Positions 2,645 through 63,847 of a stretch of 64,000 nucleotides of DNA are shown piece by piece. A model generated the notes under the pieces. That model was given only the letters and a program-made list of their open reading frames with translations, did no database searches and was not told the DNA's origin. The DNA lies in sequence record NC_062581.1; one strand, 5' to 3'. How positions within the stretch are numbered: position 1 is the first letter of the stretch; every line of letters starts with the position of its first letter. The translations under genes and the position numbers were made by a program.

Positions 2645-4066
2645 ATGAAACAATATTTGGCAATGCAAAGGGACATTTTGACCCTGGGTACAGAAAAACA
2701 AGATCGCACTAAAACAGGTACGATCTCTTATCCGGGGATGATGGCACGTTACGACATTAGTGATAATCGTCTAGCTGTAACATCAACCAAAAAACTTCAT
2801 CTGAAAACAGGACAAGTTGAAGAAGACTGGATGTTCTCAGGTGATACACGACTAAAGTTTCTGAAAGATAACAACTGTAACATTTGGGATGAATGGGTAT
2901 TACCTGGTACGGGTACCTATCGTCTACGTACATTAAAAGAAATGCGTCGTGTATATGTGCGTAACCATTTTGGCTGGGATGAACCAGGCTTCTTTAATGC
3001 ACCTTTATCAGAAGAACAAAAGGGCTACTGCAATCTAGTTCATACCGAAATTGATTTTGACATTTACGAAGTGGTACCCACCACATTGTCTAAACCTCGG
3101 CACATGGTACTAGATAAATCAGATCCAAATAAAAATTGGCTTAACTGGATTAATCCTGACGATCCAATGTGGGTTAAGTTCTACACTGGTTTGAATATCT
3201 CCGATCAAGAAGTTGTTGATGGTGAATTGGGTAAAGTGTACGGTGCTATGTTTCGTAGCATTGAAGATACACGCATTGTAAAAGATGCGTCAGCCAAAGA
3301 AACATTGGCCATGAAAAAACGTGGGTTTACCTTTGAAGGTGAACTGGCAGGCAAGCGTTCTGTGTTTACTCGGAACATTGACCAGCTGGCAAATCTACTG
3401 CATGATCTTGAACATAACCCAGATTCACGTCGTTTGATTCTTTGCCCATGGAATCCAGCGTATGTGGATGAGCAAGCCTTACCACCTTGCCATTCATTTA
3501 TTCAATTCTGGACACGTGAAATTCCTGCGGAAGAACGTTACAACATTTACGTGAAACGTTTTGAGCGGGAAAAAGCTGAACTGTTTGACGATATTGCTCG
3601 CCGGGGGCGGGCAGATATCTACACAGTCCATGTACCGTATCCACTAAGTTCTTTCATGCATGTTGAAAACGATGCATTGGTTCGTGATGAATATAAACTA
3701 CATGCCTATTTGGATGAGCTTAATGTTCCTCGTCGTGGTTTGACCTGTATCTTCTACATGCGCTCCAACGATAACTTTTTGGGTGCTCCGTATAACCTGA
3801 CGTTTTATTCGTCGTTGACGCACAAACTTGCTCACCAGTTTAATATGTATGGTGAAGAGCTAGTGCACATGGTCGGTGATGCACACATTTACCTGAACCA
3901 TTTGGATCAAGTAAAAGAACAGCAACTGCGTACTCCGGATGAAGATATGCCACGACTAAAGATCAAATGTCCTGTAGGTACTTCCATTCTGGATATGACC
4001 TTTAATGATCTTGAAGTTGTTGGCTACAATCCACAACCGGCTATTCCTGCGCCCGTAGCAGTTTAA
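2645..4066 (+). CDS. thyA: Thymidylate synthase with large insertions
   Basis: DRTKTGT, NIWDEW, GELGKVYG, DSRRLI, ALPPCH, MRSND..LGAPYN and GDAHIYLNH motifs. Confidence 0.95.
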   Translation: MKQYLAMQRDILTLGTEKQDRTKTGTISYPGMMARYDISDNRLAVTSTKKLHLKTGQVEEDWMFSGDTRLKFLKDNNCNIWDEWVLPGTGTYRLRTLKEMRRVYVRNHFGWDEPGFFNAPLSEEQKGYCNLVHTEIDFDIYEVVPTTLSKPRHMVLDKSDPNKNWLNWINPDDPMWVKFYTGLNISDQEVVDGELGKVYGAMFRSIEDTRIVKDASAKETLAMKKRGFTFEGELAGKRSVFTRNIDQLANLLHDLEHNPDSRRLILCPWNPAYVDEQALPPCHSFIQFWTREIPAEERYNIYVKRFEREKAELFDDIARRGRADIYTVHVPYPLSSFMHVENDALVRDEYKLHAYLDELNVPRRGLTCIFYMRSNDNFLGAPYNLTFYSSLTHKLAHQFNMYGEELVHMVGDAHIYLNHLDQVKEQQLRTPDEDMPRLKIKCPVGTSILDMTFNDLEVVGYNPQPAIPAPVAV

Positions 4067-4111: not shown

Positions 4112-5847
4112 ATGATCACATTAGTTGTTGGATGCATTTTACTAGCAATGGGTATCATTGGTGGTGGATTCCTATTATGGGCGTGCATTACCAATTACAT
4201 CGAGAAAGATGATCAGCTCAATTATTGTTTCGGTGCACTGATTAGTTACCTAGTGCTACTTATGGTAATGGTTGCTATTGCCATGGCTGAAAAACAATAC
4301 CTGATGAACAACTGAGGTTAACATGCAAAGTAATCTAATTGTAGCAACTGTCTACCCAATCACTGGTTGTGATAGTGTTGGGTATGTTCGTGAAATCAAA
4401 CAAGACGAAAATGGTAAGTATTCTTTTGTCCGTACAAACTCCGTTGAACGTGCACAGTTGTTCGGCGCGGAAGTTAATGCGGTAATTGATTGGATGCGTA
4501 AGGAATGCCATTACGATGGCCTGGACACAATCTATTCATTTAGCCCATTTCCAGTTAACAACCTAACCCGTATGGTGGAAGTTAGTACTCTTTCAGAACA
4601 AGCCGAGGCAAATGATGTTCAGGCGTGAATTAACCATTAGTGAACGTTGCAGTTTGATTAACCTGCGCAACGATACACGCATGACCGGGCGGCGTTCCAA
4701 CGAAGAATTTATCACTCCGGAATCACTGTGTAAGTTTCATGATCGCACTGTGGCTGAAATGACTACTTTGTTGGATACCAAGAAAGCCCCTACGCATACG
4801 ACTAATCCATACCCATTGGTTGAAGTAGTTGAGTGGCTGGCTAACCAAAACAAATCGTTAGATGCTGCCATTGTTACTGACGATTTGAATTTTAGTTCTA
4901 CTACACATGGGTATCTGGAATTTTTTCTAGACAAAGCTTTGCAGGGGGAAATACAACGAGTTAAAAATACCACCATTCGTTTAGATTTTCCAAAACAAGA
5001 TGCCCCGACTACGACCATGCATCTTTATGAAAACGATATGTTGATCCGTCGTCCAAAAGACGCTACGACGTATGTATACTTCTGTGCCATACAACCAGTA
5101 ATTGACAAAGAGACTGTACACGATGCAGATTCAGATTGATTTAGCTACTAAACGTCCAGGTTATAAAGAAGCATTGGACGCGTTCATAGAACGAAATAAA
5201 GTTCATGGTACTTTGGTAGAGTGGGGCAATCCACCTATGGGTGCCTACAACACACCTGACCGTAAACTGTGGCGCATGAGTCAAGTAAACCCCGGACAAG
5301 TCTGTGCTGAACTTGTAGAGCCTGAGTTTGATGCATCTACCGGTATATTTACCTTTCAAGTAGCACCTTACGGTCCGCGTCGGGATATGTTTGAAAAGTA
5401 TGTTAAGGAACAAAAAGATTTGGCCCTTAATAGTCGTATGACTGTAGATGGAATGAACGAAGTTGTAGAGCTTCTACAATACAGTCTTGTTCCTATTGCT
5501 GAACAAGATGACATGGTCCTACAATCCACACGTAAAGTTAAAAAGAGTAGCAAATGAAAAAGAAAGATTGGATTGCTGAACTGGGTAAAAACGTAATCAT
5601 TGGGGCCTGTTTTGTTTGGTGGTTTATTATTCGTTGGTTTGAACCACGTGAAAACTACAAAACTTTTGCGTTGTATCTGACTGCACGCCCTAACATGGGT
5701 TATGCTACACGGAAACTGTTAGAACAATTTAAAGCAACATTAAAACCTGATGATGTAGTACGTGTTATTCAATCGCCAGGTTGGTATCCAGATAGTACCA
5801 CATGGACTTTTTCTTATAAAGACGTAACTTGGAAAATAACAGAGTAA
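4112..5847 (+). other. Block of 5 hypothetical genes
   Basis: Abutting or overlapping ORFs 4112-4315 (2 TM), 4323-4628, 4612-5139, ~5123-5557, 5554-5847. Confidence 0.7.
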
Positions 5848-5915
5848 GATAATACTCGTATGGTTTATTGATTGCGGTGAGATTGCCGCTTTCAATATCC
5901 TACGAGGTCGTTACA

Positions 5916-7256
5916 ATGTCTGAAGCAGAAGTTGTACAAAAAGAAATCAAAGCAGGTTTTGGTGTAGTAGAAAAAGATCGTAAACTTGCGCGCATCGTTA
6001 TCATTGACGATGTTGTTCCACACCCTAATGCTGAACGCTTGGAACTTGCTGTAATTGGTGGTTGGCAACTCTGTGTCAAATTGGGCGAATACAAGAAAGG
6101 TGATCGTGCCGTTTATTGCGAGATCGATTCCCTGCTACCATTGTCCAACGTAGAACTCTTTGGTTTCCTGGAAGAACGCCGTTCTGATAACCGTCGGGTT
6201 GATGGTGTTAACTTTCACCGGCTGAAGACTATCAAACTGCGTAAAGAAATTTCACAAGGTCTGTTGGTTCCAGTGCCAGCTAAGTTTAAAGATTCTCCGG
6301 TTGATACTAACCTGACTCTAGAACTGGGTATCTTGAAATACGAACCACGTGCACCAATGGAGCCATCGAACAAAGAAGCTCGCGGTTCTGACTGGTACTC
6401 TCGTTTGATTCGTAAGATCATTGGTAACCTGGATGGTTCACTGATTCCTTGGCCAGCTCAACTGACTAAGTCTGATCAGGACCGAGTACAGAACAAAACT
6501 GTTGCCTTCACCCTGGCTAAAGAAGCCGGTGAAGTATTTGAAGTTACCTACAAGCTTGATGGTAGCTCGATGACTGTGTTCTGCATCAACGATAAAGGTG
6601 TCCGTACTGGTGTGTGTTCTCGTAATTACGAGCTAGGTCTGGGTGAAGGTAATTGGTCGTTCTCTGAACAGCTGCGTCATTGGGTTGGTGCTTTCCTCAT
6701 CCGTAACCGTAAAGTAGTTAGCTTGAAGAAAGTTCCTTTGGAAGAAGGTGGTTTCAAACGTAAACTACATTGGACTGGTATTCACATTCCACAGTGGTTG
6801 AAAGGTAGCATTGCTACTGAGAACAACTTCACTCGTTATGTGAAAGAACATGAAGTTACCAAGGCGCTGCGTGAATACCAAGCGCGTACTGGTGAATTCA
6901 TTACTGTTCAAGGTGAATTGATTGGTCCGGACATTCAGTCTAACTTTGAAGGTGTAGACAAACACGAATACCACGTGTTCTCTGTGTACCGTAATGGTAA
7001 CGAAGAAGTCTTGCCTGAAGAAGCTGAAAAGATTGTTAAAGAACTGGGTCTTACTTACGTTCCAATCTTTGATCGTGCGTTTGTAATCAAACCAGAACAA
7101 GGTGTTAAAGAAATCCTGGAATTGGCTGAAGGTCAACGTGCTTTCAATCCAAAGAAAGGTACTTACCGTGAAGGTCTGGTATTCAAGTCAAAATCTCGAC
7201 TGATGTCCTTCAAAGCCATCAGCAATAGCTACCTTATCAAAAAAGCAGACGAATAA
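5916..7256 (+). CDS. ATP-dependent RNA ligase (Rnl2/DRB0094-like) with N-terminal OB-fold tRNA-binding-like domain
   Basis: N-terminal HPNAERLELAVIGGWQ..VK.GEYKKGD.AVYCEIDS; ligase motifs KLDGSS, GELIGP.IQ, REGLVFK and FKAISNSYL; likely start MSEAE at 5916. Confidence 0.88.
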   Translation: MSEAEVVQKEIKAGFGVVEKDRKLARIVIIDDVVPHPNAERLELAVIGGWQLCVKLGEYKKGDRAVYCEIDSLLPLSNVELFGFLEERRSDNRRVDGVNFHRLKTIKLRKEISQGLLVPVPAKFKDSPVDTNLTLELGILKYEPRAPMEPSNKEARGSDWYSRLIRKIIGNLDGSLIPWPAQLTKSDQDRVQNKTVAFTLAKEAGEVFEVTYKLDGSSMTVFCINDKGVRTGVCSRNYELGLGEGNWSFSEQLRHWVGAFLIRNRKVVSLKKVPLEEGGFKRKLHWTGIHIPQWLKGSIATENNFTRYVKEHEVTKALREYQARTGEFITVQGELIGPDIQSNFEGVDKHEYHVFSVYRNGNEEVLPEEAEKIVKELGLTYVPIFDRAFVIKPEQGVKEILELAEGQRAFNPKKGTYREGLVFKSKSRLMSFKAISNSYLIKKADE

Positions 7257-19604: not shown

Positions 19605-20468
19605 ATGAAACTGTTGTCCATGATTAAAACTGCTGCACTTGCAATGGTTGCTGTAGTGGCTCTGCAAGGTTGCTCGTTTGAAGTTATTCCACCTGCCTTT
19701 AAAGGTAAGGTCCTGACTACTTCTGGTTACAATCCAGAAATCCTGGAGCCGGGTAAAGAAACCCTGTTTGGTCGTGACGAACTGGTTCTTCTGGAAACCG
19801 GTACCCGCACCGTAGCGGAAACCATTACCGTTAAAATGGAAGACAAACTGGACCTCACTTTTGATGTCCGCTTCCGTACTCGCATTGGCGGTAACGAGAA
19901 AGTCCTGAACGCAATGTTCAATGACATTCAAGTTCAAAACCGTATGGTTACTCTGCAACAAGTCTACGGCGTGTATGGCCTGGACGTAGTGCAATCAGTA
20001 GCTCGTTCCGTTGTAGGTAAGTACAAGACCGAAGACGTCGGTGCTAACTTTGATAACATCACCAAAGACCTGGCTGAACGTCTGACCAAAGCAATGGTGA
20101 ATTCGCCCCTGGAAGTATCAAACGTTACCTTGGGTAATCTGAAATATCCTGATGTTATTACCATTGCAATTGAAAAGCAATCGGAACGTCGTCTGGCTAT
20201 TGAAACAGAAACCAACCAGCAGGCAATTGAAACCACCAAGCGTACCAACATGTTGGCTTTGGCACAATTGGATCGCGATATCGAACTGACTCGCGCTAAA
20301 ACCCTGCGTGACTCTAACGCTATCACTGCTGATGGCCTGAGCCCAATGCTGCTTGCTTACAAAGCACTGGACGTTCAGCAAGATATGGCTAAGAACAATG
20401 CCGCTGTATTCGTGCCTTACGAGGCTATGGGTAGCAGCGGTTTGTCGAACCGCATCTTTAACAAGTAA
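19605..20468 (+). CDS. SPFH/band-7 (prohibitin-like) lipoprotein
   Basis: Lipobox LQGC; band-7 pattern (VIPPAFKGKVLT, V.LGNLKYPD.IT.AIEK); C-terminal coiled coil. Confidence 0.85.
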   Translation: MKLLSMIKTAALAMVAVVALQGCSFEVIPPAFKGKVLTTSGYNPEILEPGKETLFGRDELVLLETGTRTVAETITVKMEDKLDLTFDVRFRTRIGGNEKVLNAMFNDIQVQNRMVTLQQVYGVYGLDVVQSVARSVVGKYKTEDVGANFDNITKDLAERLTKAMVNSPLEVSNVTLGNLKYPDVITIAIEKQSERRLAIETETNQQAIETTKRTNMLALAQLDRDIELTRAKTLRDSNAITADGLSPMLLAYKALDVQQDMAKNNAAVFVPYEAMGSSGLSNRIFNK

Positions 20469-40791: not shown

Positions 40792-42348
40792 TTACTTTCC
40801 TACAGAACGCAACCAACGATCAATCAATTCATTGGTCTTAGCTTTGTATTTCAGGTATTTCAAAAACAGTTCTTCAGCACGTGGGTGCTCACGAACAATC
40901 ATGAAACCATGTGTTACACGCAGGTAATCTTCTGCACCAATAACAATGGATGGATCTTCCAGAGCAATAGCAATGTCTTCCAACCGATCAAGGTTTTGAA
41001 GAGCAGTCCATGCATCTTCCACATCAGCGTAGATTGTTTTTGGGATAGCGCTTTGGCTGATGTGGTACAGTGTAAAAGGACCTTCGTGTTTAGTAACTAC
41101 AATTGCTTCACCGTCACCAAAACGATCCAACCAACGTTCGTTGTTAATAGCCAGGTCAGTGTAGTACTTAGCTACGGATGGCATGGTTTCTTCTAGCAAC
41201 GCTTGTAGACCATCATTAAGATGCTGAAAAATACGGAAACCATTACTAACAAATGATTCTGGATTAAATTCAGGATCGGTAGTGTCAACGTAAAGCAATG
41301 CCAGTTGCTTACCTTCCGGCAGATCACGTTCAAATAGGTACGCATGCTTACGTGATTCAGGATCAGCCAGATTATGCTTAGCAATAGACATTGCCAGTTG
41401 TGGTGCTTGTTCCTGAATTGCTTCTCTGACGAGATCTACGGTAGTTTCCGGATCAGGATCGGCGGGATCAATTGTGAGTTCGACGTCTTTTGGAAAATCT
41501 TCCTGATATCGTTTTACAATATCCTCGGTCACTAGGTAATTAAGTTTAGCTTTAATTACAATATCCGCATCTGGATATTTTCTTTTGAAGTGATCTACAA
41601 TCAGTTCTGGGTTAGTTTCGTCTTTATCCAGTTCTAGTTTCAGAGTCACTTTGCGAGGTGGAACATACAGTTCAGCAGTAGCAATACCTTCTTGCGAACC
41701 AACATCATCAAATGGATCACAGTCAGGATCTTCACCGTATTCCGGTTCATCTCCACTGTCGTATTCTTGCTCATCAGTGTCCGTATCCACCGCTTCATCT
41801 GGATCACCCAGTGGGCGATGACGATCGGTGTGCCATCGAGATTCTACACCAGTGATAACAATCTTACTACCAGCTGGAGGTAATGACAATCCACGTTCTT
41901 CGTGGGTCAATGTAGTGTCGGCAATATTAAGTGCAGTATCGTAACCACCACCAACCAAAAACAAAGGCAAGCGACGCGCCAGTGCTTCAGCGCCAGAATT
42001 TGCCTGGAAACCAGTTACGGTAATATGCAAGGTGTTTTCTTCCACACCTACAATATCACCGGCTTTATCAACTACAAAATCAGCTGTAGTTTTTTCTTCT
42101 GGTTTAATTACATCAGCATATTCGCTTTGCTTAGTAATGTCGTATTTGAACAGATGCGACATCAGTCGAGCAGCGGCAATGTTAGCTTGTTGACGTGTAA
42201 TACCAGTAGCATCCATGATAGGCATGGCCAGGTTACATTGCCAACCCCACGCGTAACCTTCATCATCACGAATCGCAGCTTTAAGGCGATCAAATGCTTC
42301 ACCTGTGGTAATAGTGTATTCTACAGCTTTTGTAATTTCGGTGCTCAT
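40792..42348 (-). CDS. Hypothetical multidomain protein with acidic linker
   Basis: 518 aa; D/E-rich central segment; N-terminal GYAWGWQCNLAM. Confidence 0.8.
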   Translation of the reverse strand: MSTEITKAVEYTITTGEAFDRLKAAIRDDEGYAWGWQCNLAMPIMDATGITRQQANIAAARLMSHLFKYDITKQSEYADVIKPEEKTTADFVVDKAGDIVGVEENTLHITVTGFQANSGAEALARRLPLFLVGGGYDTALNIADTTLTHEERGLSLPPAGSKIVITGVESRWHTDRHRPLGDPDEAVDTDTDEQEYDSGDEPEYGEDPDCDPFDDVGSQEGIATAELYVPPRKVTLKLELDKDETNPELIVDHFKRKYPDADIVIKAKLNYLVTEDIVKRYQEDFPKDVELTIDPADPDPETTVDLVREAIQEQAPQLAMSIAKHNLADPESRKHAYLFERDLPEGKQLALLYVDTTDPEFNPESFVSNGFRIFQHLNDGLQALLEETMPSVAKYYTDLAINNERWLDRFGDGEAIVVTKHEGPFTLYHISQSAIPKTIYADVEDAWTALQNLDRLEDIAIALEDPSIVIGAEDYLRVTHGFMIVREHPRAEELFLKYLKYKAKTNELIDRWLRSVGK

Positions 42349-43616
42349 GCAGTTACCTGTTCATTGGATTGATATTCACGAGAAGCACGAAGACGAACCT
42401 TGGCTTCAGTTGTAGTTTCAGTGACCCACACAGTCATGCAACCATTTTGATATTGGGCATTGACTGTAAATTTCAGTTCTGGAAATTTATCTACTAGTTG
42501 TTGTGTAATGTGTTCTGATACAACTGCATCGGCATTACCCAGGATAGCTTCCGTACCTAGGAAAACATCTTCCAGCGCTTTGGTTGCTACTGTAGTGATT
42601 TCAATAATCTTACTGACATTACGTGAACGTTTCTTTTGTTCTTCCGTACGTACAGGGAAAAGATCATTGACCACATTGTCATTTGGCACTGGTGCACCTA
42701 TAGTCATTTCGGTACGAGTAAAACCTAGATCATGAACAACTTCTTCATCACTGAGAGTATCCTCTACTACAATGGTGAATGTCCAATCCCGACCAATAGC
42801 AGCGGTTACGTTTACTTGGAAGTTTTCATTCTCGTAACGCTCAACCAAACGTTCTTTAATACGGATGTTAGCTGCGCAGATCATTTCATGGGTGTTCAGT
42901 TTAGAATCACCCAGTAGTTCATTAAATACTTCAGCAGCAATCTTCTTTACTTGTTTTGCAAAAACACTTTCTGTTTGGGACATTGTATCACCTTCAAAAC
43001 GGGTAAGTGGTGCTTGTACCACTTCTACATAACAATGGTCAGGTGAGTTATAAATTGCACCCTGTACATTAAACATCAATGGCGCACCCAGTTCGTAGTC
43101 GGAATAATACACCGAAACCGTAGTGTGATTTTCAGGGTAGACCATTTTTACTTGATCACGAATATCTTCTTCTACAAACAGACGAAGTTCTTCTGCCGTA
43201 GAGATAGCGTTGTTGCTAACATCAGCAACAACTTCTTTGGTAACGTTAATCAAGAACTCTTTGAAATCGGTAAACAACGGAATGAGTTCTTCCACTGGTA
43301 AAGTTTGTACCGATTTGACAATCTGGAATTGATCAATATCACGATTAAGCTTTTCACAAACTTTAACCATGTACTGTTCTACATCAGAACCCTTAACCAA
43401 AGTAACGGTAACGGTATGGTAATAGGTACCTAGCTCGTGGGTATCGGGAGTCCATTTGTAATCCGTTGCTAACTTGGCTTCTAACTTAGTAGCAAGTTCC
43501 AGGTTAATGCGACCCACAATGTAAACATACTTCTGCGCATGGGTCAGATAAACTTGGCTGGTCACATCCTGCAAGTGCTTTAATACGGTTTCTTCTACTT
43601 GTTTGATTGTGTCCAT
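42345..43616 (-). CDS. Hypothetical protein
   Basis: 423-aa ORF coupled to rtcB. Confidence 0.8.
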   Translation of the reverse strand: MDTIKQVEETVLKHLQDVTSQVYLTHAQKYVYIVGRINLELATKLEAKLATDYKWTPDTHELGTYYHTVTVTLVKGSDVEQYMVKVCEKLNRDIDQFQIVKSVQTLPVEELIPLFTDFKEFLINVTKEVVADVSNNAISTAEELRLFVEEDIRDQVKMVYPENHTTVSVYYSDYELGAPLMFNVQGAIYNSPDHCYVEVVQAPLTRFEGDTMSQTESVFAKQVKKIAAEVFNELLGDSKLNTHEMICAANIRIKERLVERYENENFQVNVTAAIGRDWTFTIVVEDTLSDEEVVHDLGFTRTEMTIGAPVPNDNVVNDLFPVRTEEQKKRSRNVSKIIEITTVATKALEDVFLGTEAILGNADAVVSEHITQQLVDKFPELKFTVNAQYQNGCMTVWVTETTTEAKVRLRASREYQSNEQVTA

Positions 43617-43617
43617 A

Positions 43618-44880
43618 TTAACCTTTCACACAGAGGAATTGTTTTAGGGTGTGCACGATTTCAACCAGTTCAGATTGTGCCGCCATTACGTCATCAATGT
43701 TCTTGTATGCCTTAGGGGTTTCATCCAGAACACTTGCATCTTTACGACATTCTACACCAGCTGTATCACGGATATGATCTTCCAGTGTAAAAGTCTTTTC
43801 TGCTTGTGTACGGGACATTACTCGACCTGCACCATGTGAACATGAACAGAACGATTCTCGGTTTCCTTTACCGCGGACAATGAATGACTTAGCACCCATA
43901 GAACCTGGAATGATCCCCAGTGTTCCTTCACTTGCGTTGACTGCACCTTTACGTGTTACAATAACATTCTCACCAAAGTGGCGTTCTTGTGATACGTAGT
44001 TGTGGTGGCAGTTAATTGCCTCTAGATCCGAATCAATTGGCAGGCCCAGTGTTTTGTGGATGGCATCCAAAGCAGCGTGCATCATCACGGAACGATTTAG
44101 TGCAGCAAAGCGTTGTGCCCAAGATACGGCTTCAACGTAGTCATCGTAGTAACGTGAACCTTCCGGCAGATAAGAAAGATCTTTATCCGGAAGGTGGATA
44201 AAGAAACGCCCCATTTCTTCTTTGGCTTTGCTAATGAAGTAAGTACCAATAGCGTTACCAATACCACGCGAACCCGAGTGTAGCATAATCCATACACGAT
44301 CTGTTTCATCAAGACACAGTTCAATGAAGTGGTTACCCGTACCCAGTGTCCCTACATGGTTCCAAGCACGCTCGGATGCTTTCTTCAATTTAGGGTGGCG
44401 TTCAACAATGCTATCCAATTGCTTCCGTAGTTTTGCAGCTTCTTCACGAACAGCTACGGTTGGGTGATTGAAGATATTAACGGTACCAAATGCACCACGA
44501 TCATTCTTACCACCATTGTCAGTACGACCATGTGGCACACATGCTTCAATGGCTGCACGAAGATGTCCCAGAGAGTCTGGAAGCGCGTCTGAAGAGAATC
44601 TCAGACGTTGTGCTGCCATTCCGCATCCAATATCAACACCTACCGCAGAAGGGATGATAGCGCCTTTGGTAGCAATAACAGAACCAATGGTTGCACCTTT
44701 ACCCACATGAACGTCTGGCATCACTGCTACGTGGGAATAAATGAATGGCAATGCTGCAATGTTTTTCAATTGCTTTACTGCATCGGGTTCTACTGGTACA
44801 CCTACGGTCCAGCCTTTAATTGGCTTAGCTCCGTCAATAGGCTCACCACCTAGAATTTCAAATGTTTTACTCTGTTTCAT
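43618..44880 (-). CDS. rtcB: RtcB RNA-splicing/repair ligase
   Basis: MPDVHVGKGATIG, VGVDIGCG, GTLGTGNHF, LHSGSRG, HHNY, IPGSMG, SCSHGAGR and DETPKAYK motifs. Confidence 0.96.
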   Translation of the reverse strand: MKQSKTFEILGGEPIDGAKPIKGWTVGVPVEPDAVKQLKNIAALPFIYSHVAVMPDVHVGKGATIGSVIATKGAIIPSAVGVDIGCGMAAQRLRFSSDALPDSLGHLRAAIEACVPHGRTDNGGKNDRGAFGTVNIFNHPTVAVREEAAKLRKQLDSIVERHPKLKKASERAWNHVGTLGTGNHFIELCLDETDRVWIMLHSGSRGIGNAIGTYFISKAKEEMGRFFIHLPDKDLSYLPEGSRYYDDYVEAVSWAQRFAALNRSVMMHAALDAIHKTLGLPIDSDLEAINCHHNYVSQERHFGENVIVTRKGAVNASEGTLGIIPGSMGAKSFIVRGKGNRESFCSCSHGAGRVMSRTQAEKTFTLEDHIRDTAGVECRKDASVLDETPKAYKNIDDVMAAQSELVEIVHTLKQFLCVKG

Positions 44881-45961: not shown

Positions 45962-46843
45962 TTATTTTAAGAACGTACCACATGATGCTTTTACGTCTGT
46001 ACCTACGCGAGGAATAACTTTGACTCGTGCCTTAGGCAAGCGTCTACGAATATAACCTGCCAGGTAATTAATCTGTCCTTCTAAGCTTTCTTGTGAGCTA
46101 TGACCATCGGGTGGATTGTACCGAACAATGTTCCAATTGACATCCAGCTTATACGTATCAAGTTGATCACAGATCTTTGCTACGTCTGCAAGATCATCAT
46201 TTTCATTACGAATGAATGCATAATGAATCTTTGGTTTTTTACCGGTGGCTTGTTGCCAGGACATTAGCTTAGCAAACGCCGCACTCGGATTAAGTGCTTT
46301 AGGTATCCAGCGTTTACGAAACTCGGGTTTTAAGGAATACACCGAGTAATAAATTTCTGGATAAAGATCTGGATGTGTGAAGATTTCAGTTAATCCACGG
46401 TTCATCATTTCCTGTGGAAAAATGGTAGACACCAAAAACTTATATTCCAAACCGTAACGTGAAGCACGTTCCGCTAAACCATCCAAAATGATGTCGGCAT
46501 TGTCTAGGAAGATCTTGTTGGCTAAAGGTTCACCACGAGCCATGAAATTGAAATGTACTTTACGAGCCATTGTTTTAGTGGCGTAGTATTGTAGTACACG
46601 TTCAGCTTGATCCCAGTATTCTTCAATGGTTACATCACGTAGTTTGTTTTGTCCCGTAGCTGTTAAATGGCACATACGGCAGGCTTGATTACAGCCTGTC
46701 TGAGAAGACAAATAAACAATGAAGTAATCATCGCTCCGACGTACATACCGTGCCTCTAACATCCCTGGGTGATCTTCAAAGCGGTGTTCAAAGTTAACGG
46801 ACTGATCAAGTTGTGATATGTGTTGTTTAAAGATAAGTTCCAT
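45962..46843 (-). CDS. RlmN/Cfr-family radical SAM RNA methyltransferase-like protein
   Basis: YLSSQTGCNQACRMC (CxxxCxxC), FMARGEPLAN, RYNP and C-terminal ASCG motifs. Confidence 0.85.
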   Translation of the reverse strand: MELIFKQHISQLDQSVNFEHRFEDHPGMLEARYVRRSDDYFIVYLSSQTGCNQACRMCHLTATGQNKLRDVTIEEYWDQAERVLQYYATKTMARKVHFNFMARGEPLANKIFLDNADIILDGLAERASRYGLEYKFLVSTIFPQEMMNRGLTEIFTHPDLYPEIYYSVYSLKPEFRKRWIPKALNPSAAFAKLMSWQQATGKKPKIHYAFIRNENDDLADVAKICDQLDTYKLDVNWNIVRYNPPDGHSSQESLEGQINYLAGYIRRRLPKARVKVIPRVGTDVKASCGTFLK

Positions 46844-53633: not shown

Positions 53634-53673
53634 TTACGTCTCCCGTCCATGGTTCGAATAGATATAACGAAAT

Positions 53674-53697
53674 AATGGAAGCCGAAGCTTCCATTAG
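53674..53697 (-). terminator. Hairpin/terminator after tRNA-Asn
   Basis: TAATGGAAGC-TTCG-GCTTCCATTA, 10-bp stem. Confidence 0.75.
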
Positions 53698-54080: not shown

Positions 54081-54158
54081 AGCCCTCCTTAGATACCGAA
54101 TCTAAATCTCTCTATCCGTGGTATGGACAGAGCGCTTTACCGATTAAGCTAGGTGGGC
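54081..54158 (-). ncRNA. tRNA-like RNA with 8-bp anticodon stem, no CCA
   Basis: GCCCACC/GGAGGGC, GCTT-AATCGGTA-AAGC, CTCTGTCC-ATACCAC-GGATAGAG, TTAGA-TTCGGTA-TCTAA. Confidence 0.7.
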
Positions 54159-54165
54159 ATTGAAT

Positions 54166-54251
54166 TGGTGGATGAAGGAAGGAATTGAACCTCTAGGAGA
54201 ACCGGCGGGGTTACAGGCCGCTGACAGTAGCCATCTGTCTCTACATCATCC
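54166..54251 (-). tRNA. Non-canonical tRNA-Tyr(GTA)
   Basis: Loop CTGTAAC; 8-bp acceptor with one U-U pair; 5-bp D stem GACAG/CTGTC; A73 and CCA. Confidence 0.75.
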
Positions 54252-54259
54252 GTAAAACA

Positions 54260-54394
54260 TTTGAAACTAACTATGGAGAAAGGCGACTCGTTTTATCTCC
54301 TGACTTGTACCCATGCACCCATTATTGAATCACCGGGCGGCTCCTTTAGTGTGATTCGGGCTGTACCTTACCGTCGTTGTTAGTTAATTTCAAA
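54260..54394 (-). ncRNA. Putative structured RNA between tRNA-Pro and tRNA-Tyr
   Basis: Outer TTTGAAA..AACTA/TAGTT..TTTCAAA; inner GAATCAC/GTGATTC and GGAGA/TCTCC. Confidence 0.5.
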
Positions 54395-54396
54395 AC

Positions 54397-54472
54397 TGGT
54401 CAGAGTGGGAGGACTTGAACCTCCGACCACGTAGTCCCAAACCACGCATTCTACCAACTGAACTACACTCTG
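54397..54472 (-). tRNA. tRNA-Pro(TGG)
   Basis: CAGAGTG/CACTCTG, CGTGG-TTTGGGA-CTACG, CCA; 76 nt. Confidence 0.96.
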
Positions 54473-54479
54473 ATGAAAC

Positions 54480-54556
54480 TGGCGGTTCCTACGGGACTTG
54501 AACCCGTGACCTCTCGCGTGACAGGCGAGCGCTCTAACCAACTGAGCTAAGGAACC
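54480..54556 (-). tRNA. tRNA-Asp(GTC)
   Basis: GGTTCCT/AGGAACC, CTCGC-CTGTCAC-GCGAG, G73 and CCA. Confidence 0.96.
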
Positions 54557-54562
54557 TAAAGC

Positions 54563-54667
54563 ATTGAGAGTAACGGCGCTTTAACCGATTAAGCTAACGG
54601 CCCTGTTGGATAGGCGGGCCTTCCGAGTCAAGGGATTTGAACCCAAGTACCTCCGTTACTCTCGAAT
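54563..54667 (-). ncRNA. Circularly permuted tRNA-like RNA, YrlA/Y-RNA-like (unit C)
   Basis: 11-bp outer stem GAGAGTAACGG/CCGTTACTCTC extended by ATT/AAT with bulged C; T-loop GGG-TTCAAAT-CCC; closed acceptor GGCCC/GGGCC; D arm GCTT-AATCGGTTA-AAGC. Confidence 0.8.
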
Positions 54668-54835
54668 CTATGCTACTTGCTGTTCACGTTTACTGACCAT
54701 GTAATCAGCATCGTTTACAGCTTCCCGAAGTATCTGTTTATCTAGTTTAAGATTCTTCCAACTTAGCCTGCTGCAACAGCGGCAATCTGCTGGACCAAAG
54801 TCATCTAAAGGACGTGGTTTAATCTTAACTTTCAT
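54668..54835 (-). CDS. 55-aa protein inside the tRNA cluster (not in ORF track)
   Basis: GGAG RBS; MKVKIKPRPLDDFGPADCRCCSRLSWKNLKLDKQILREAVNDADYMVSKREQQVA*. Confidence 0.65.
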   Translation of the reverse strand: MKVKIKPRPLDDFGPADCRCCSRLSWKNLKLDKQILREAVNDADYMVSKREQQVA

Positions 54836-54856: not shown

Positions 54857-54934
54857 TGGTGTGAATGAAGAGGATCGAACTCTTGACTTCCAGGGTCACA
54901 TCCTGGCACTCTAACCGACTGAGCTACATTCACC
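54857..54934 (-). tRNA. tRNA-His(GTG)
   Basis: GTGAATG/CATTCAC, CCAGG-ATGTGAC-CCTGG, genomic G at -1, A73, CCA. Confidence 0.92.
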
Positions 54935-60293: not shown

Positions 60294-61511
60294 TTATGCC
60301 GGTACCACTTCTTTTGGCTGATAGTCTTTCAACAGAGCCATATCAAAACCAGGAATAGCAAATTCAAAGGTTGCGTTCTCATCACGACGTGTCAACAGAT
60401 TCGTCATGTAATCACCTTTCTTTTCTTCTTGTGCAGAAGCTTGTGTAGCGGAGATCTGAATGTACTTGGTCATGTAAGGAAGAGGGTTCTTCTCAGGCCA
60501 TTCAAATGGGAAACCAGAGATTTGCTCAAAGTCCCAATCAAACCGGAAGAAGATGTCATCTTTAACGCCCAAGAATTCTGCTGCTGCTTTAGCGTTAAAC
60601 AGAACCCATTGAATCAAAGACTTGGCAGTAACACCTGTCAGTTCACGACCTTCTGAGAACAGGTAAGTAGCCCATTCAACTTCAGTGCGAATAACTTCCC
60701 ACAACAAACGGACAATCTTATCTTTACATTGTTCGTACGCAATCTTACCACGTTCAGTAGCAAGTTCTGCTCGCAGTACATGTTGACCGAATTGTGCATG
60801 GATCTCAAATTCATCAATTGCGATCTTTTGGACTGCTTTAGTAATCTGTTGGAACAGACCAGTACGACCAATGGCAAAGGTTACAGCAAACGATGCCATG
60901 AACTGGATACGTTCCAAGAAGTACAATGCAATCAAGAACATGAAAATATCGTTATATGTTTCTTGGGTGTTACCTACTTCACCAAGACCATACTGCAATG
61001 ATGTTTTCAATGCACGAGACATTACATCGGAGACTACGGTCATCCGAGAGTGTGCTTCTTCTACTTTCAGAATCTCTTCACGAATCTCATCCGGATCATC
61101 AAAAGAACCACGAACGATTTCAGAATACGTCAACGCGTGAACACATTCGTTTTCAGAGATACGGTTATAGCCAGTCCAGATACGGCCATCAGTTACAACG
61201 TTACCCAGAATGGTTACAATCGAACGAGAGGCGACCGAGTCTGCTTCCCATTGCCATGCTAGGGTTTTAATCATCATGTCGTAGATCGACTTGTCAGCTG
61301 CTTTGAATTCAGCATTACAAGAAGAGAAGTCGAATTCTAGTTCATCCCAATCCAGCGAACGAAGACGCTTGTACAATGCCCAAGCTTCTGGATGGTTGTG
61401 TGTAATGGAGTCAAGCAAACCTGGATCTTCACCCAAGATGATGCTGTAGGAACCGTAGTCCCCTTTACTCAAGTTAAAAATCTTTGAAGACGTATCTGCA
61501 ACAGTAGTCAT
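60294..61511 (-). CDS. nrdB: Ribonucleotide reductase class Ia beta subunit
   Basis: Metal ligands WEADS, ENECVHALTY (radical Tyr), LERIQFMASF and DEFEIH; likely start MTTVADT at 61511. Confidence 0.93.
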   Translation of the reverse strand: MTTVADTSSKIFNLSKGDYGSYSIILGEDPGLLDSITHNHPEAWALYKRLRSLDWDELEFDFSSCNAEFKAADKSIYDMMIKTLAWQWEADSVASRSIVTILGNVVTDGRIWTGYNRISENECVHALTYSEIVRGSFDDPDEIREEILKVEEAHSRMTVVSDVMSRALKTSLQYGLGEVGNTQETYNDIFMFLIALYFLERIQFMASFAVTFAIGRTGLFQQITKAVQKIAIDEFEIHAQFGQHVLRAELATERGKIAYEQCKDKIVRLLWEVIRTEVEWATYLFSEGRELTGVTAKSLIQWVLFNAKAAAEFLGVKDDIFFRFDWDFEQISGFPFEWPEKNPLPYMTKYIQISATQASAQEEKKGDYMTNLLTRRDENATFEFAIPGFDMALLKDYQPKEVVPA

Positions 61512-61561
61512 GTATATTTTCCAATTAGGGTGTTGTGGGTGACCGAAGCCACCCAGTCTAT

Positions 61562-63847
61562 TCAGAGGGAGCAAGCACCACTGGCACAGCCAGCATCTTC
61601 AGTTGTGTTAGCAAACGCAGACACACCACCATTCAAGTTTGCACCAGCAACGATTTCAACGTTGTGGTAGTAACGAGTTTTCTGACCTACGTGGTTCATG
61701 TACAACCAATCGTCAATCAGTTCGTTCGAATAGATGTGTTCTTGACCTGGAAGGATTCGACGGAACAAGTCAGCAGAGATACCACCATCAGTCCATTTCT
61801 GCCAGATGCCGTATCCATCAATTTGACGACGTGTTGGAATTTCCCAAGCCAGTTCATATTCGTATTCAGGATCATCGCTGAACGGAGCAGCCCACTGAAT
61901 GGTAATGTTGTTGTCTGTCTTGATGATAGTCAATGCACGAACGGCGTAGATTGAGTTAGCGCCACCCAGTGCTTTAGACGAAGCTTCGCCTGGCATGAAT
62001 GCACCCAATACAGAGTGAGCCAACCCACCAGCTTTGATGATCAGTTTACGCAGTGGTTCCCAGTCTTGTTCGTTAACAAAACCACCAGCAACAACGGTAT
62101 CAATGTTACGGTTGTAAGTATCGAGAGGCAACCAACCTTGAGGCCACTTGGTCTTATGAATCCATGGAGCCAACCCACGCTCTTCAACAATACGTAGCGA
62201 TGCTTTGATCAAGCAATACATGTGGCGTTCTGCAAGACGGTGCATCTCACGCAAACCTTCTTCCGAAGAATAACGCAGTTTACGTTTGGCCATGTGGGTA
62301 GCCAGACCCATGATACCAACACCAGCGGAGCGTCGAGATTTAGCAGTCAGTTCCAAATGCGGGAAAGCATATTCGGAATTGTCAATACAGTAGTCAATCA
62401 TCTTCAATGCATAGTAAGAAACTTCTTCATAACGCTCTTGGGTATGAATGTTGTTTACTACAATTGCAGCCAACGAACAAGTAGCAATTTCACCACGGCC
62501 ATGATCTTCAGTTGAGTGCAGATCTTGCATCGAGTAATACGGTGCCGTCGGTTGGCAGATTTCCAAACACAGGTTAGACGACAAGATTGGATCAAGGAAA
62601 GGCGTGTGCCGATTGATCTCAGTCATGTTAGCCCAGTAAGCTGTACCGGTTTCAATACCTTCGTTCAGTGCAGTCAATACAACTTTACGTGCGTTGACGT
62701 AAACTTTCTTGAATGCTGGATCTTTCTCGTACTGCATGTACAGATTAATAAACTTGGAGATATCGCCATCATAGAAAGCAGTGTGTAGATCTGGAGCAGT
62801 GTAGATGTTCCAGGTCATCATCTCTCTGTCATTTGCAACCAACCATGCGGTAAAGGTGTTGGTCATCATGGCGTAATGCAGGTCACGGTTCTTTTTGTCG
62901 TCAGTCGACTTAGGGTTCCGCAAACGGGAGATGGTTTCTACTTCTGGGTCAAAGACGTTGTAGTACAATGAAATTGCACCGCCACGACCGTTCTGTGTGT
63001 TAGCACGAACAGCTTTACCTTGAGCAGCAATGTACGGCAGTTTACCTTGGTGTTTGATCAGACCGTTACGAACTGGATCGTTCAAAGAACGAGTAATCAA
63101 GTTAACGCCAATGCCTGCAGCTTTCTGTGTCATCACGTTAGCAATGTAATCACCAACTGCTAGCGATACGCCATTATCACCGGAAGCAAACAAGCAGCAC
63201 GATGCAAAGCCTTTAAGGACAGTACCCAGGTTAACGTAGTTAGGTGTTGGTGCAGACAGTTCCCGTTGCGAGAACATCTCGTACCAATTCTTAACATGTT
63301 TCATACGTACATTAGCTGGCTCTTTCTCAGCCAATGCCATAGCCATACGCATGTAAGTGAACTGAGGTGTTTCATATTCTTTCTTGGTAACACGGTTCAT
63401 CAGGGAATACTTCTGACGAATGTGATGCAAAGCAAAGTGTGGTGAATCCAAGTCTAGATCGTGATTGATCAGTTTTTCTAGTTGTGCATATTCACGAGTA
63501 GAGTAATCCAACTTAACCATTACTTTGTCAGCACGCATCCGAGTGTGCAGTGCTTTAATGCTTGGGATACCATCCAGGCTGTAAATCTTCTTGCGTACAC
63601 TTACTGCATACAAACGACCAGCTGCTACATAAGCTGACCAGGTTTCCATATCCAGCAGTCGATTGATAAGTGCTTGTTGGAATTCTTGAGAGTGGACTTT
63701 CTCTGGCAGTTCAGCAACTGTATCCATTACAACAGATGCCCAGTCGATATTGTGCAGGTTCTTAGAGAACCACTCACCCCAACCGTTGGCTTTATGAGCC
63801 ATGTAGGGTTCTTCAGTGCCGTCCAACTTGATGATTGTCTTGATCAT
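61562..63847 (-). CDS. nrdA: Ribonucleotide reductase class I alpha subunit
   Basis: N-terminal ATP-cone-like MIKTIIKLDG; ETPQFTYMR, PTPNYVN, ASCC, SSNLCLEI, CSLAAI and C-terminal CASGACSL. Confidence 0.95.
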   Translation of the reverse strand: MIKTIIKLDGTEEPYMAHKANGWGEWFSKNLHNIDWASVVMDTVAELPEKVHSQEFQQALINRLLDMETWSAYVAAGRLYAVSVRKKIYSLDGIPSIKALHTRMRADKVMVKLDYSTREYAQLEKLINHDLDLDSPHFALHHIRQKYSLMNRVTKKEYETPQFTYMRMAMALAEKEPANVRMKHVKNWYEMFSQRELSAPTPNYVNLGTVLKGFASCCLFASGDNGVSLAVGDYIANVMTQKAAGIGVNLITRSLNDPVRNGLIKHQGKLPYIAAQGKAVRANTQNGRGGAISLYYNVFDPEVETISRLRNPKSTDDKKNRDLHYAMMTNTFTAWLVANDREMMTWNIYTAPDLHTAFYDGDISKFINLYMQYEKDPAFKKVYVNARKVVLTALNEGIETGTAYWANMTEINRHTPFLDPILSSNLCLEICQPTAPYYSMQDLHSTEDHGRGEIATCSLAAIVVNNIHTQERYEEVSYYALKMIDYCIDNSEYAFPHLELTAKSRRSAGVGIMGLATHMAKRKLRYSSEEGLREMHRLAERHMYCLIKASLRIVEERGLAPWIHKTKWPQGWLPLDTYNRNIDTVVAGGFVNEQDWEPLRKLIIKAGGLAHSVLGAFMPGEASSKALGGANSIYAVRALTIIKTDNNITIQWAAPFSDDPEYEYELAWEIPTRRQIDGYGIWQKWTDGGISADLFRRILPGQEHIYSNELIDDWLYMNHVGQKTRYYHNVEIVAGANLNGGVSAFANTTEDAGCASGACSL

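Follow-up and report, generated by a model that had tools for sequence, protein, structure and literature searches.

An unannotated element in the tRNA array of Pseudomonas phage Psa21

The DNA analyzed here (the window) is the final 64 kb of the 305-kb genome of Psa21 (MK552327.1), a jumbo phage of Pseudomonas in the genus Tepukevirus; window position 54300 corresponds to record position 295560. Within a tRNA array lies an element of 105 bases (minus strand, 54667..54563) that carries no annotation in the GenBank record and that an earlier note, made from the sequence alone, had described as a circularly permuted tRNA mimic of the YrlA Y RNA type. On the minus strand, the array runs from tRNA-His (54933..54857) through the open reading frame (ORF) PSA21_418 (54835..54668) and the element to tRNA-Asp (54556..54480), tRNA-Pro (54472..54397), more tRNA-like sequences, and then tRNA-Asn. 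PSA21_418 encodes 55 amino acids, and its stop codon (TAG, 54668–54670) directly touches the element; at the other end, 6 nt (GCTTTA) separate the final AAT of the element (54565–54563) from tRNA-Asp. No minus-strand terminator-like site was found between tRNA-His and tRNA-Asn, consistent with a single transcript, and the first one downstream of the array is a terminator-like hairpin just past tRNA-Asn (53673..53696, minus strand).

The Psa21 element has the layout of a permuted tRNA

Every segment listed in the earlier note was present on the minus strand. The outer helix, which stands in for the anticodon stem, consists of a 5' strand, GAGAGTAACGG (54663–54653), and its perfect 11-bp complement, CCGTTACTCTC (54576–54566); beyond a single bulged C (54664), ATT (54667–54665) pairs with the terminal AAT to give a 3-bp extension. 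The linker AGGTA (54652–54648) is variable-loop-like and reads AGAA in most relatives. It leads into the T arm (54647–54629; C-TTGGG/TTCAAAT/CCCTT-G), with a 6-bp stem and the T loop TTCAAAT. The Psa21 T stem (CTTGGG/CCCTTG) contains two U.U mismatches, and because relatives have Watson-Crick pairs at those places, it is regarded as a real 6-bp stem. The acceptor-like arm follows (54628–54597). Its 3' side is made up of AC (54628–54627), the bulge TCGGAA (54626–54621), and GGCCC (54620–54616); a 12-nt closing loop, GCCTATCCAACA (54615–54604), which has the form GCC-T...AACA, connects it to the 5' side, GGGCC-GT (54603–54597). Pairing of AC with GT joins the GGCCC/GGGCC helix to form one 7-bp acceptor-like stem (2 + 5 bp) broken by the 6-nt bulge, which is conserved. 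In the closing loop, GCC occupies the place of the tRNA discriminator G73 and of C74 and C75, and AACA that where a 5' leader ends. TA (54596–54595), the equivalents of U8 and A9, then precedes the D arm (GCTT/AATCGGTTA/AAGC, 54594–54578), which is followed by G (54577), the equivalent of G26.

Folding of the single sequence at minimum free energy (−36.5 kcal/mol, z = −2.26) retains three of these parts: the outer helix, the GGCCC/GGGCC hairpin, and the D arm. As the earlier note had anticipated for standard tRNA finders, neither ARAGORN nor Rfam at its gathering threshold called the native element, and Rfam returned only eight ordinary tRNAs. A protein-coding reading was discarded, as only ORFs of 21–32 aa cross the element. 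Inspection of the bulge for hammerhead, k-turn, GNRA, and CsrA-site readings gave no fit or covariation.

Related elements form a family in unrelated phages

A blastn search of 50,697 phage records found a 73-nt core in unrelated phages at 84%–92% identity. A covariance model, R1, was built from five homologs, and DNA-pattern scans of IMG/VR and metagenomes were filtered with it. True members scored 60–113 bits with R1, the best tRNA-tRNA junctions 23 bits or less, and the Psa21 element 94.1 bits (E ~1e-24). The patterns differed in yield: a bare 14-mer gave at least 120 matches, nearly all by chance, and a T-arm-plus-bulge pattern gave zero new members, whereas a pattern across the acceptor 5' strand and D stem gave seven divergent members and a bulge-variant pattern one.

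In total, 18 distinct family sequences were collected, of which eight named phages account for part and viral or metagenome contigs (given here by L numbers, as are the phage records where positions are quoted) for the remainder. Besides Psa21, the named carriers are the jumbo relative RVTF4, Peetri (200 kb), pf16 (158 kb, Chakrabartyvirus), Astolliot and Milchi (~174 kb; Astolliot is an Otagovirus), and Cronobacter phage GAP31 and Enterobacter phage EC152 (both Seunavirus). Their hosts are Pseudomonas, Cronobacter, and Enterobacter, and the element is unannotated in all eight. D6, which these searches place nearest to Psa21, was missing from the blastn match list for the element. In 185,579 bacterial and archaeal species genomes, the core pattern, a single narrow one, matched 27 places, none of which R1 accepted, and neither 5,426 complete E. 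coli genomes nor 72,556 plasmids contained a match to the GAP31 copy. We found no description of this RNA family in the literature searched, and no Rfam family matched it in these scans.

In 11 of 16 lineages, the element is part of a tRNA array and has the same orientation as the neighboring tRNAs. In pf16, GAP31, L050, and L057, 0–3 nt separate its start from the 3' CCA of a preceding tRNA or tRNA-like sequence, and it ends 4–9 nt ahead of a downstream tRNA in Psa21, Astolliot/Milchi, and L050; the spacing in RVTF4 is similar if, by our reading, an uncalled tRNA-Tyr-like sequence is counted. Such spacing is that of a tRNA "slot," which the element fills in most lineages. Even jumbo relatives differ in its place in the array, the order being His-ORF-element-Asp in Psa21, His-Tyr-element-Asp in L050, and element-Tyr-like-ORF-Asp in RVTF4. 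Across lineages, the element has no conserved protein-gene neighbor. The sole protein cluster common to three lineages is a PRPP synthetase, 3–5 kb from the element in GAP31, L229, and L238. HNH endonuclease genes are frequent in these tRNA arrays.

Several neighboring sequences are of interest in their own right. The RVTF4 element is followed directly by the tRNA-Tyr-like sequence mentioned above (L003 ~3345–3432, minus strand), which has the anticodon loop CTGTAAC, a long variable arm, and a CCACCA end and was not called by ARAGORN; in 6.5 kb of the RVTF4 record, no tRNA is annotated compared with three found by ARAGORN. PSA21_418, which contains a CRCC motif, is conserved in RVTF4, where it lies between the tRNA-Tyr-like sequence and tRNA-Asp, and it has no PHROG match. 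Directly upstream of the element in GAP31 (L007 2880–2983) and L057 (~5596–5675) are tRNA-like 3' ends (…GGTTCGAATCC…CCACCA) belonging to sequences of ~100 nt that were also uncalled by ARAGORN; the one in L057 is tRNA-Sec-like at 28.7 bits (Rfam). The Peetri member (L009 2967–3094) has an ungapped 27-bp terminal helix with a few G.U pairs, the 5' strand of which overlaps an alternative upstream hairpin (GTACCACC…GGTGGTAC). Within the Psa21 array, the region between tRNA-Pro and tRNA-Asn (54081–54396, minus strand) is more than ordinary spacer. A tRNA-Gly(ACC) called there by ARAGORN (54081–54158) scores just 19.5 bits with the Rfam tRNA model, a weak tRNA-Sec-like match (22.8 bits) lies at 54170–54251, and a block of ~100 nt following tRNA-Pro (~54300–54396) recurs, by eye, nearly unchanged after tRNA-Asp in D6 (L002 ~3320–3420).

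Covariation supports the fold and locates a conserved core

Seventeen aligned sequences and 25 modeled base pairs were evaluated against 500 shuffles and slid-register controls. In the true register, 94.3% of cells were paired compared with 25%–49% in the slid controls, and both sides change in 15 of the 25 pairs. For four of the five measures, no shuffle out of 500 reached the observed value; for the fifth, the count of double-changed pairs, one did. In the outer helix, 97.8% of cells are paired, and each of the eight modeled pairs shows changes on its two sides; the helix is built from unrelated sequence in each lineage, with an ungapped length of 8–27 bp. All six T-stem pairs covary (for example, CCAAUG/CAUUGG, CCGGUG/CAUCGG, and GGUGG/CCAUC). 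In the acceptor-like stem, pair 66:7 is A-U in six members and U-A in 11, and pair 67:6 is C-G in 17 and U-A in L248, the 18th sequence, which shows only compensated or wobble differences from the others. An independent RNAalifold prediction from ten members recovered the outer helix, T hairpin, acceptor-like arm, and D arm, with just three pairs in the T hairpin and an acceptor-like stem base that is longer by two pairs. When members were de-permuted, with the helix artificially closed and the bulge deleted, ARAGORN (-ps90, lowered threshold) called a tRNA in six of six. The order of T arm, loop-closed acceptor stem, and D arm within an outer helix, as read in the Psa21 element by the earlier note, is therefore confirmed, and covariation across the distinct homologs supports the fold. 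Given the covarying fold, the RNAalifold layout, and the ARAGORN calls on the de-permuted sequences, "circularly permuted tRNA mimic" is an accurate description of the element.

The acceptor-like arm is the most conserved part of the element, and the invariant blocks cluster there and in the D stem. All 17 aligned members share GG.CCGCC (the acceptor 3' strand followed by G-C-C), AACAGGGC in the acceptor-like arm, and AACA directly ahead of GGGC.G., where a 5' leader would meet position +1. The loop between the two strands varies from 8 to 12 nt, and GCC and AACA are kept even at GCCUAACA (L241 and L229); in L244, the loop reads GCCA. The bulge is always 6 nt (consensus NNNGGAM), and its GGA is unvaried in all 18 sequences; no partner sequence for it was found. 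Also invariant in the alignment are TAGCTTA (U8, A9, the D-stem 5' strand, and A14) and AGCG (the D-stem 3' strand and G26), the latter replaced in L248 by AGUG, which gives a G.U pair. In the linker, A44 is invariant and G45 almost so.

Nucleotides of the tRNA elbow (G18G19 with U55C56) are less uniform. Of the 17 aligned members, 14 have them: the T-loop consensus fits these 14, and also L248, and the D-loop GG is found in 15 of 17, and also in L248, within D loops of 8–13 nt. By inspection, positions 15 and 48 neither form nor covary as a Levitt pair. A subgroup of three (L227 1726–1819, L221 4604–4697, and L244 4756–4849) has an unrelated hairpin in place of the T loop and an unchanged acceptor-like arm; both halves of the elbow seem to have been lost together in this subgroup, which indicates that the elbow is not universally required. 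The universal core of the family is the acceptor-like arm plus the D stem, neither the elbow nor the terminal helix. The bulged C, a feature that the earlier note gave, together with the permuted topology, as characteristic of YrlA RNAs, is indeed present in Psa21, but it and the 3-bp extension recur only in Astolliot/Milchi (AAT-C-/ATT), i.e., in 2 of 16 lineages.

The family shares the YrlA fold, with no link to Ro60 found in its named carriers

YrlA RNAs consist of a permuted variable region, T arm, loop-closed acceptor stem, and D arm within a terminal stem (Chen et al. 2014, PMC4201824; 10.1101/312249). In the 5' part of YrlA, the motif GNCGAAN0-1G is the probable Rsr-binding site (PMC4201824; 10.1101/312249). 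The YrlA-like reading of the Psa21 element in the earlier note holds for the permuted topology and fails for the Rfam score, the TROVE neighbor, the motif, and the conservation of the bulged C. The Rfam YrlA model (RF02553) scored the element at 20.5 bits (E 0.026 in a 161-nt search), compared with a gathering threshold of 69 bits. The seven other members tried gave no match at E ≤ 10, and tRNA-tRNA junctions scored 20.7–21.8 bits, which places the Psa21 score at noise level for YrlA. As a control, the published YrlA of mycobacteriophage ET08 (L214 28197–28274), located ~190 nt upstream of the Ro-like gp220, scored 37.4 bits with the same model. This is also under 69 bits, so the Rfam threshold is strict and misses a published phage YrlA, yet the ET08 RNA is clearly above the Psa21 element. 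In the reverse test, R1 gave the ET08 YrlA 16.7 bits.

No Ro60/TROVE gene was found in the named carrier phages. In agreement with the earlier note, none was found in the window: Pfam detected no TROVE domain in 10 of the 12 window ORFs of at least 250 aa, the other two (60294–61574 and 61562–63847) being annotated ribonucleotide reductase subunits, and tblastn with the ET08 Ro-like protein gave no match to the window or to the complete genome of GAP31. Across phage records, tblastn with ET08 gp220 identified TROVE genes in 356, from phages of Mycobacterium, Streptomyces, Gordonia, Microbacterium, Rhodococcus, Agrobacterium, Mycolicibacterium, Sinorhizobium, and Vibrio. None of the 356 belongs to a Pseudomonas, Cronobacter, or Enterobacter phage and, thus, none to a named carrier. 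The motif GNCGAAN0-1G occurs in only 1 of the 17 aligned members (Peetri, GCCGAAG), based on a regular-expression scan of the 5' flank and first 25 nt of ten members and a reading of the alignment for the other seven; Psa21 has merely UUCGAGAG where the Rsr motif would be. On the carrier phage genomes examined, the family shares the YrlA fold and lacks the features that go with Ro60. It is a distinct, Ro60-less, phage-specific RNA with its own signature, although the permuted, YrlA-like kind of RNA was already known.

RNA repair genes are present but dispersed

The window encodes several RNA-related proteins, as well as NAD-related ones. An RtcB gene (PSA21_396, 43618–44880, minus strand; Pfam E 4e-129) lies ~10 kb from the element on the same strand and had been overlooked by the earlier note, which described YrlA RNAs as linked to RtcB. 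It is followed by the overlapping genes PSA21_395 (423 aa) and PSA21_394 (518 aa), the whole RtcB-394 span covering 40792–44880 (minus strand). Further features are an RlmN-like radical-SAM protein (45962–46843, minus strand), an Rnl-type RNA ligase with a PHA02142 OB-fold (5868–7256, plus strand), an SPFH/Band-7 protein (19605–20468, plus strand), and a NAMPT gene adjoining one for ribose-phosphate pyrophosphokinase (149–1978, plus strand).

The two genes after RtcB were considered as a hidden Ro60, which seems improbable: PSA21_394 and PSA21_395 had no Pfam, PHROG, or PDB sequence match. Homologs of PSA21_394 are mostly found on contigs of ~305–317 kb and have no Pfam domain. Its AlphaFold model, which is weak (pLDDT 64.7, pTM 0.35), had no Foldseek match in the PDB at E ≤ 0.001, suggesting that PSA21_394 is not recognizably a TROVE protein.

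Both RtcB and SPFH are encoded by RVTF4 and pf16. In GAP31, no RtcB, SPFH, or TROVE gene was found; this phage encodes Rnl1, Rnl2, and a tRNA nucleotidyltransferase. RtcB is therefore not a family-wide companion of the element. Conversely, D6 has RtcB and SPFH without the element. RtcB was found in 680 phage records compared with eight phages for the element, and SPFH/Band-7 in 135, mostly non-carriers, with no Cronobacter or Enterobacter phage among them.

A proposed non-decoding tRNA mimic and its alternatives

The reading we favor, with about an even chance of being correct, is that the element encodes a small structured RNA belonging to a family specific to phages, namely a circularly permuted tRNA mimic acting independently of Ro60. 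Its tRNA-like body is made up of the T arm, the D arm, and U8/A9/A14/G26/A44, joined in most members by the D-loop GG and T-loop UUC of the elbow; its 5' and 3' ends are clamped by 8–27 bp of arbitrary sequence at the place of the anticodon arm, and its acceptor end is closed by a loop. The element would be transcribed with the array and excised by the enzymes that mature its neighbors. RNase P, acting at the 5' end of the downstream tRNA (tRNA-Asp in Psa21), would set the 3' end of the element, and 3'-end processing of the upstream tRNA would free its 5' side; the tRNA-slot spacing suggests release by the same cuts as the neighboring tRNAs. Members outside arrays would depend on other nucleases, and the 27-bp stem of Peetri would be long enough for RNase III. 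The working part of the RNA may be the invariant acceptor-like arm, in which the 7-bp stem is predicted to stack on the T stem and the GGA bulge is fixed. G73-C74-C75 after the stem and the AACA leader before it reproduce the layout of a pre-tRNA acceptor end, making it a candidate substrate for RNase P and the CCA enzyme. We propose this because the YrlA of M. smegmatis, with a 7-bp acceptor stem, is processed in that way, i.e., cut by RNase P and then given CCA (PMC4201824; 10.1101/312249). GAP31 also encodes a tRNA nucleotidyltransferase of its own. Such processing would leave a tRNA look-alike in two pieces that would have no anticodon and be unable to decode but could occupy or divert a host or phage tRNA-binding factor during infection, such as a tRNA-directed defense enzyme. 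The GGA bulge may serve as a specific protein contact or as an anti-determinant that bars the mimic from translation.

Several observations weigh against this interpretation. The ends of the RNA, its accumulation, and its cleavage by RNase P are all things that we infer. The 6-nt acceptor bulge and the 13-bp (6 + 7) acceptor/T stack may make a poor RNase P substrate. Five lineages (L170, Peetri, L238, L239, and L244) have the element between ORFs, outside tRNA arrays, and array processing cannot therefore be the sole route of release. The Psa21 element abuts an ORF and could there be the structured 3' end of that mRNA. L227, L221, and L244 lack the T-loop consensus, two of them also the D-loop GG, and the proposal leaves the invariant GGA bulge without explanation. 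Finally, absence from bacteria was judged with narrow patterns only, which could overlook divergent bacterial members.

Phage tRNA arrays are increasingly viewed as a means to counter the depletion or damage of tRNA by host enzymes. A more specific form of the proposal would make the RNA itself part of counter-defense: RNase P would open the loop, the CCA enzyme would finish the GCC end, and the arm with the invariant GGA bulge would be a decoy for, or inhibitor of, a host enzyme by which tRNA acceptor ends are attacked or sensed. We regard the full scenario, again Ro60 independent, as unlikely. If a non-decoding, covarying tRNA look-alike with a pre-tRNA-like acceptor end is confirmed, then it would represent a new type of player in phage tRNA arrays. 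In practical terms, it is an unannotated RNA gene, missing from Rfam scans, that a covariance model like R1 could annotate.

The remaining explanations are less probable. In the first, improbable one, the two ends, set beside each other at the tip of a helix like an anticodon stem, imitate a tRNA broken in the anticodon loop, and the RNA guides, activates, or titrates RtcB or Rnl-type ligases, a role suggested before for YrlA and for the Band-7-associated tRNA beside RtcB. The repair genes of the Psa21 window (RtcB, the Rnl-type ligase, and SPFH/Band-7), the RtcB and SPFH genes of RVTF4 and pf16, and Rnl1 and Rnl2 of GAP31 speak for such a role, as do the published associations of RtcB, Band-7, and tRNA-like RNAs (10.1101/312249). 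GAP31 lacks RtcB and SPFH, however, and D6 has both yet not the element; the numbers of phages with RtcB and with the element differ widely; the repair genes are 10–35 kb away, with no conserved neighbor; and conservation falls on the acceptor-like arm rather than on the helix end at which ligation would take place.

About equally improbable is that the element acts in cis as a tRNA-shaped mark for RNase P or 3' exonucleases that defines and protects the ends of neighboring transcripts, for example, the PSA21_418 mRNA. Contact with the PSA21_418 stop codon, 6 nt ahead of tRNA-Asp, would suit this role, as would the five lineages in which ORFs, not tRNAs, flank the element; tRNA-like substrates of RNase P are known to occur at RNA 3' ends (10.1101/312249). 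Any stable hairpin or tRNA would do for that purpose, however, leaving the invariant bulge, GCC, and AACA in unrelated phages unexplained, and several members lie between two tRNAs with no mRNA to protect.

That the element is a genuine YrlA Y RNA, in which a host Ro60/Rsr ring would bind the bulged-C helix and an effector would be recruited through the tRNA-like module, appears more doubtful still. The permuted architecture is the same (PMC4201824; 10.1101/312249), the best Rfam match of Psa21, weak as it is, is to YrlA across the full model length, and UUCGAGAG with the bulged C at the helix base loosely resembles GGUCCGA/GNCGAA. Searches of Ro60-containing bacteria have also reported a possible YrlA in P. 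fulva (PMC4201824). Against these points stand a score equal to that of tRNA-tRNA junctions, the lack of a YrlA match in the other members examined, and the non-conservation of helix sequence, motif, and bulge. In addition, published YrlAs lie within 4 kb of rsr, and only ~5% of bacteria have Ro60 (PMC4201824), and no named carrier encodes TROVE, although 356 other phage records do.

Two further readings are very improbable. A permuted tRNA gene that matures to a decoding tRNA by ligation of its ends and opening of the acceptor loop, as in Cyanidioschyzon merolae, would account for the permuted order, the 7-bp acceptor stem followed by GCC, the RNA ligases of carriers, and the ARAGORN calls on de-permuted constructs, but a variable helix of 8–27 bp replaces the 5-bp anticodon stem, the ends carry no conserved anticodon-loop sequence, and the 6-nt bulge in the acceptor stem does not allow normal use as a tRNA. 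A nonfunctional remnant left by rearrangement of tandem tRNA genes (a 3' half plus the next 5' half), or a DNA site such as a homing-endonuclease target, would fit the T-then-D order of tRNA-tRNA junctions, the HNH genes common in the arrays, and the shuffled position between related phages, but three helices stay paired through compensatory changes in 18 sequences, every lineage has remade the flanking helix from unrelated sequence, and the core is 80%–94% identical between unrelated phage groups, all of which indicates selection on RNA structure.

Comparison with known systems

The element differs from an ordinary tRNA (RF00005) in its closed acceptor end and replaced anticodon arm, and this identity was rejected since neither ARAGORN nor the Rfam tRNA model called it. 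Descent from one particular tRNA was likewise not apparent, none of the best local matches, which are to Met, Gly, Asp, and Ser tRNAs, clearly standing out.

The permuted tRNA genes of C. merolae and two-piece tmRNAs have the 3' half upstream of the 5' half, and the intervening sequence is removed by RNase P and 3' processing. The element shares with them the 3' half placed before the 5' half and an acceptor end closed by intervening sequence, but it has no anticodon loop (a 5-bp stem with a 7-nt loop), its 8–27-bp helix is too long for decoding, and, in contrast to both systems, it is found in phages rather than in an alga or bacterium. A two-piece tmRNA was considered and rejected: ARAGORN found no tmRNA, the Rfam tmRNA match was a 13-nt T-loop stretch of 5.7 bits, and tRNA-Asp follows 6 nt on. 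Unlike tmRNA, the element has no tag reading frame or pseudoknots.

With rnaC and rnaD of T4 (species 1 and 2), the element has in common that small, stable, non-tRNA RNAs are encoded inside a phage tRNA cluster. The T4 RNAs are matured along with the tRNAs and are not known to have a function. Kinship was not supported: with filters off, R1 scored the T4 rnaC/rnaD sequences at 8.1 bits or less and its best matches in the T4 tRNA region, which were tRNA junctions, at 14 bits or less. T4 rnaC also differs in having a normal T arm near its 3' end and is not permuted.

[quoted passage not shown] However, b7a-tRNA is said to look like an authentic, non-permuted tRNA and adjoins its partners (10.1101/312249), whereas here the RtcB and SPFH genes are dispersed and GAP31 has neither.

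The closest likeness is to the YrlAs of M. smegmatis and mycobacteriophage (RF02553), with the same succession of variable region, T arm, loop-closed acceptor, and D arm, a stem formed by the two ends, some of the tRNA tertiary nucleotides (U8, A9, A14, G26, and A44 throughout the alignment), and, as in M. smegmatis, a 7-bp acceptor stem; phage-encoded YrlAs also exist. The present family differs in that its named carriers lack Ro60/TROVE, its Rfam score is at noise, R1 gives the ET08 YrlA a score far below that of true members, and the Rsr motif is confined to a single aligned sequence. Its bulged acceptor arm, which carries GCC and AACA, is invariant, and the family resides in the tRNA arrays of phages of Gammaproteobacteria. 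A YrlA-style permuted fold thus probably exists without Ro60, which would separate the fold from its sole known partner and provide a second, simpler system in which to ask what permuted tRNA mimics do.

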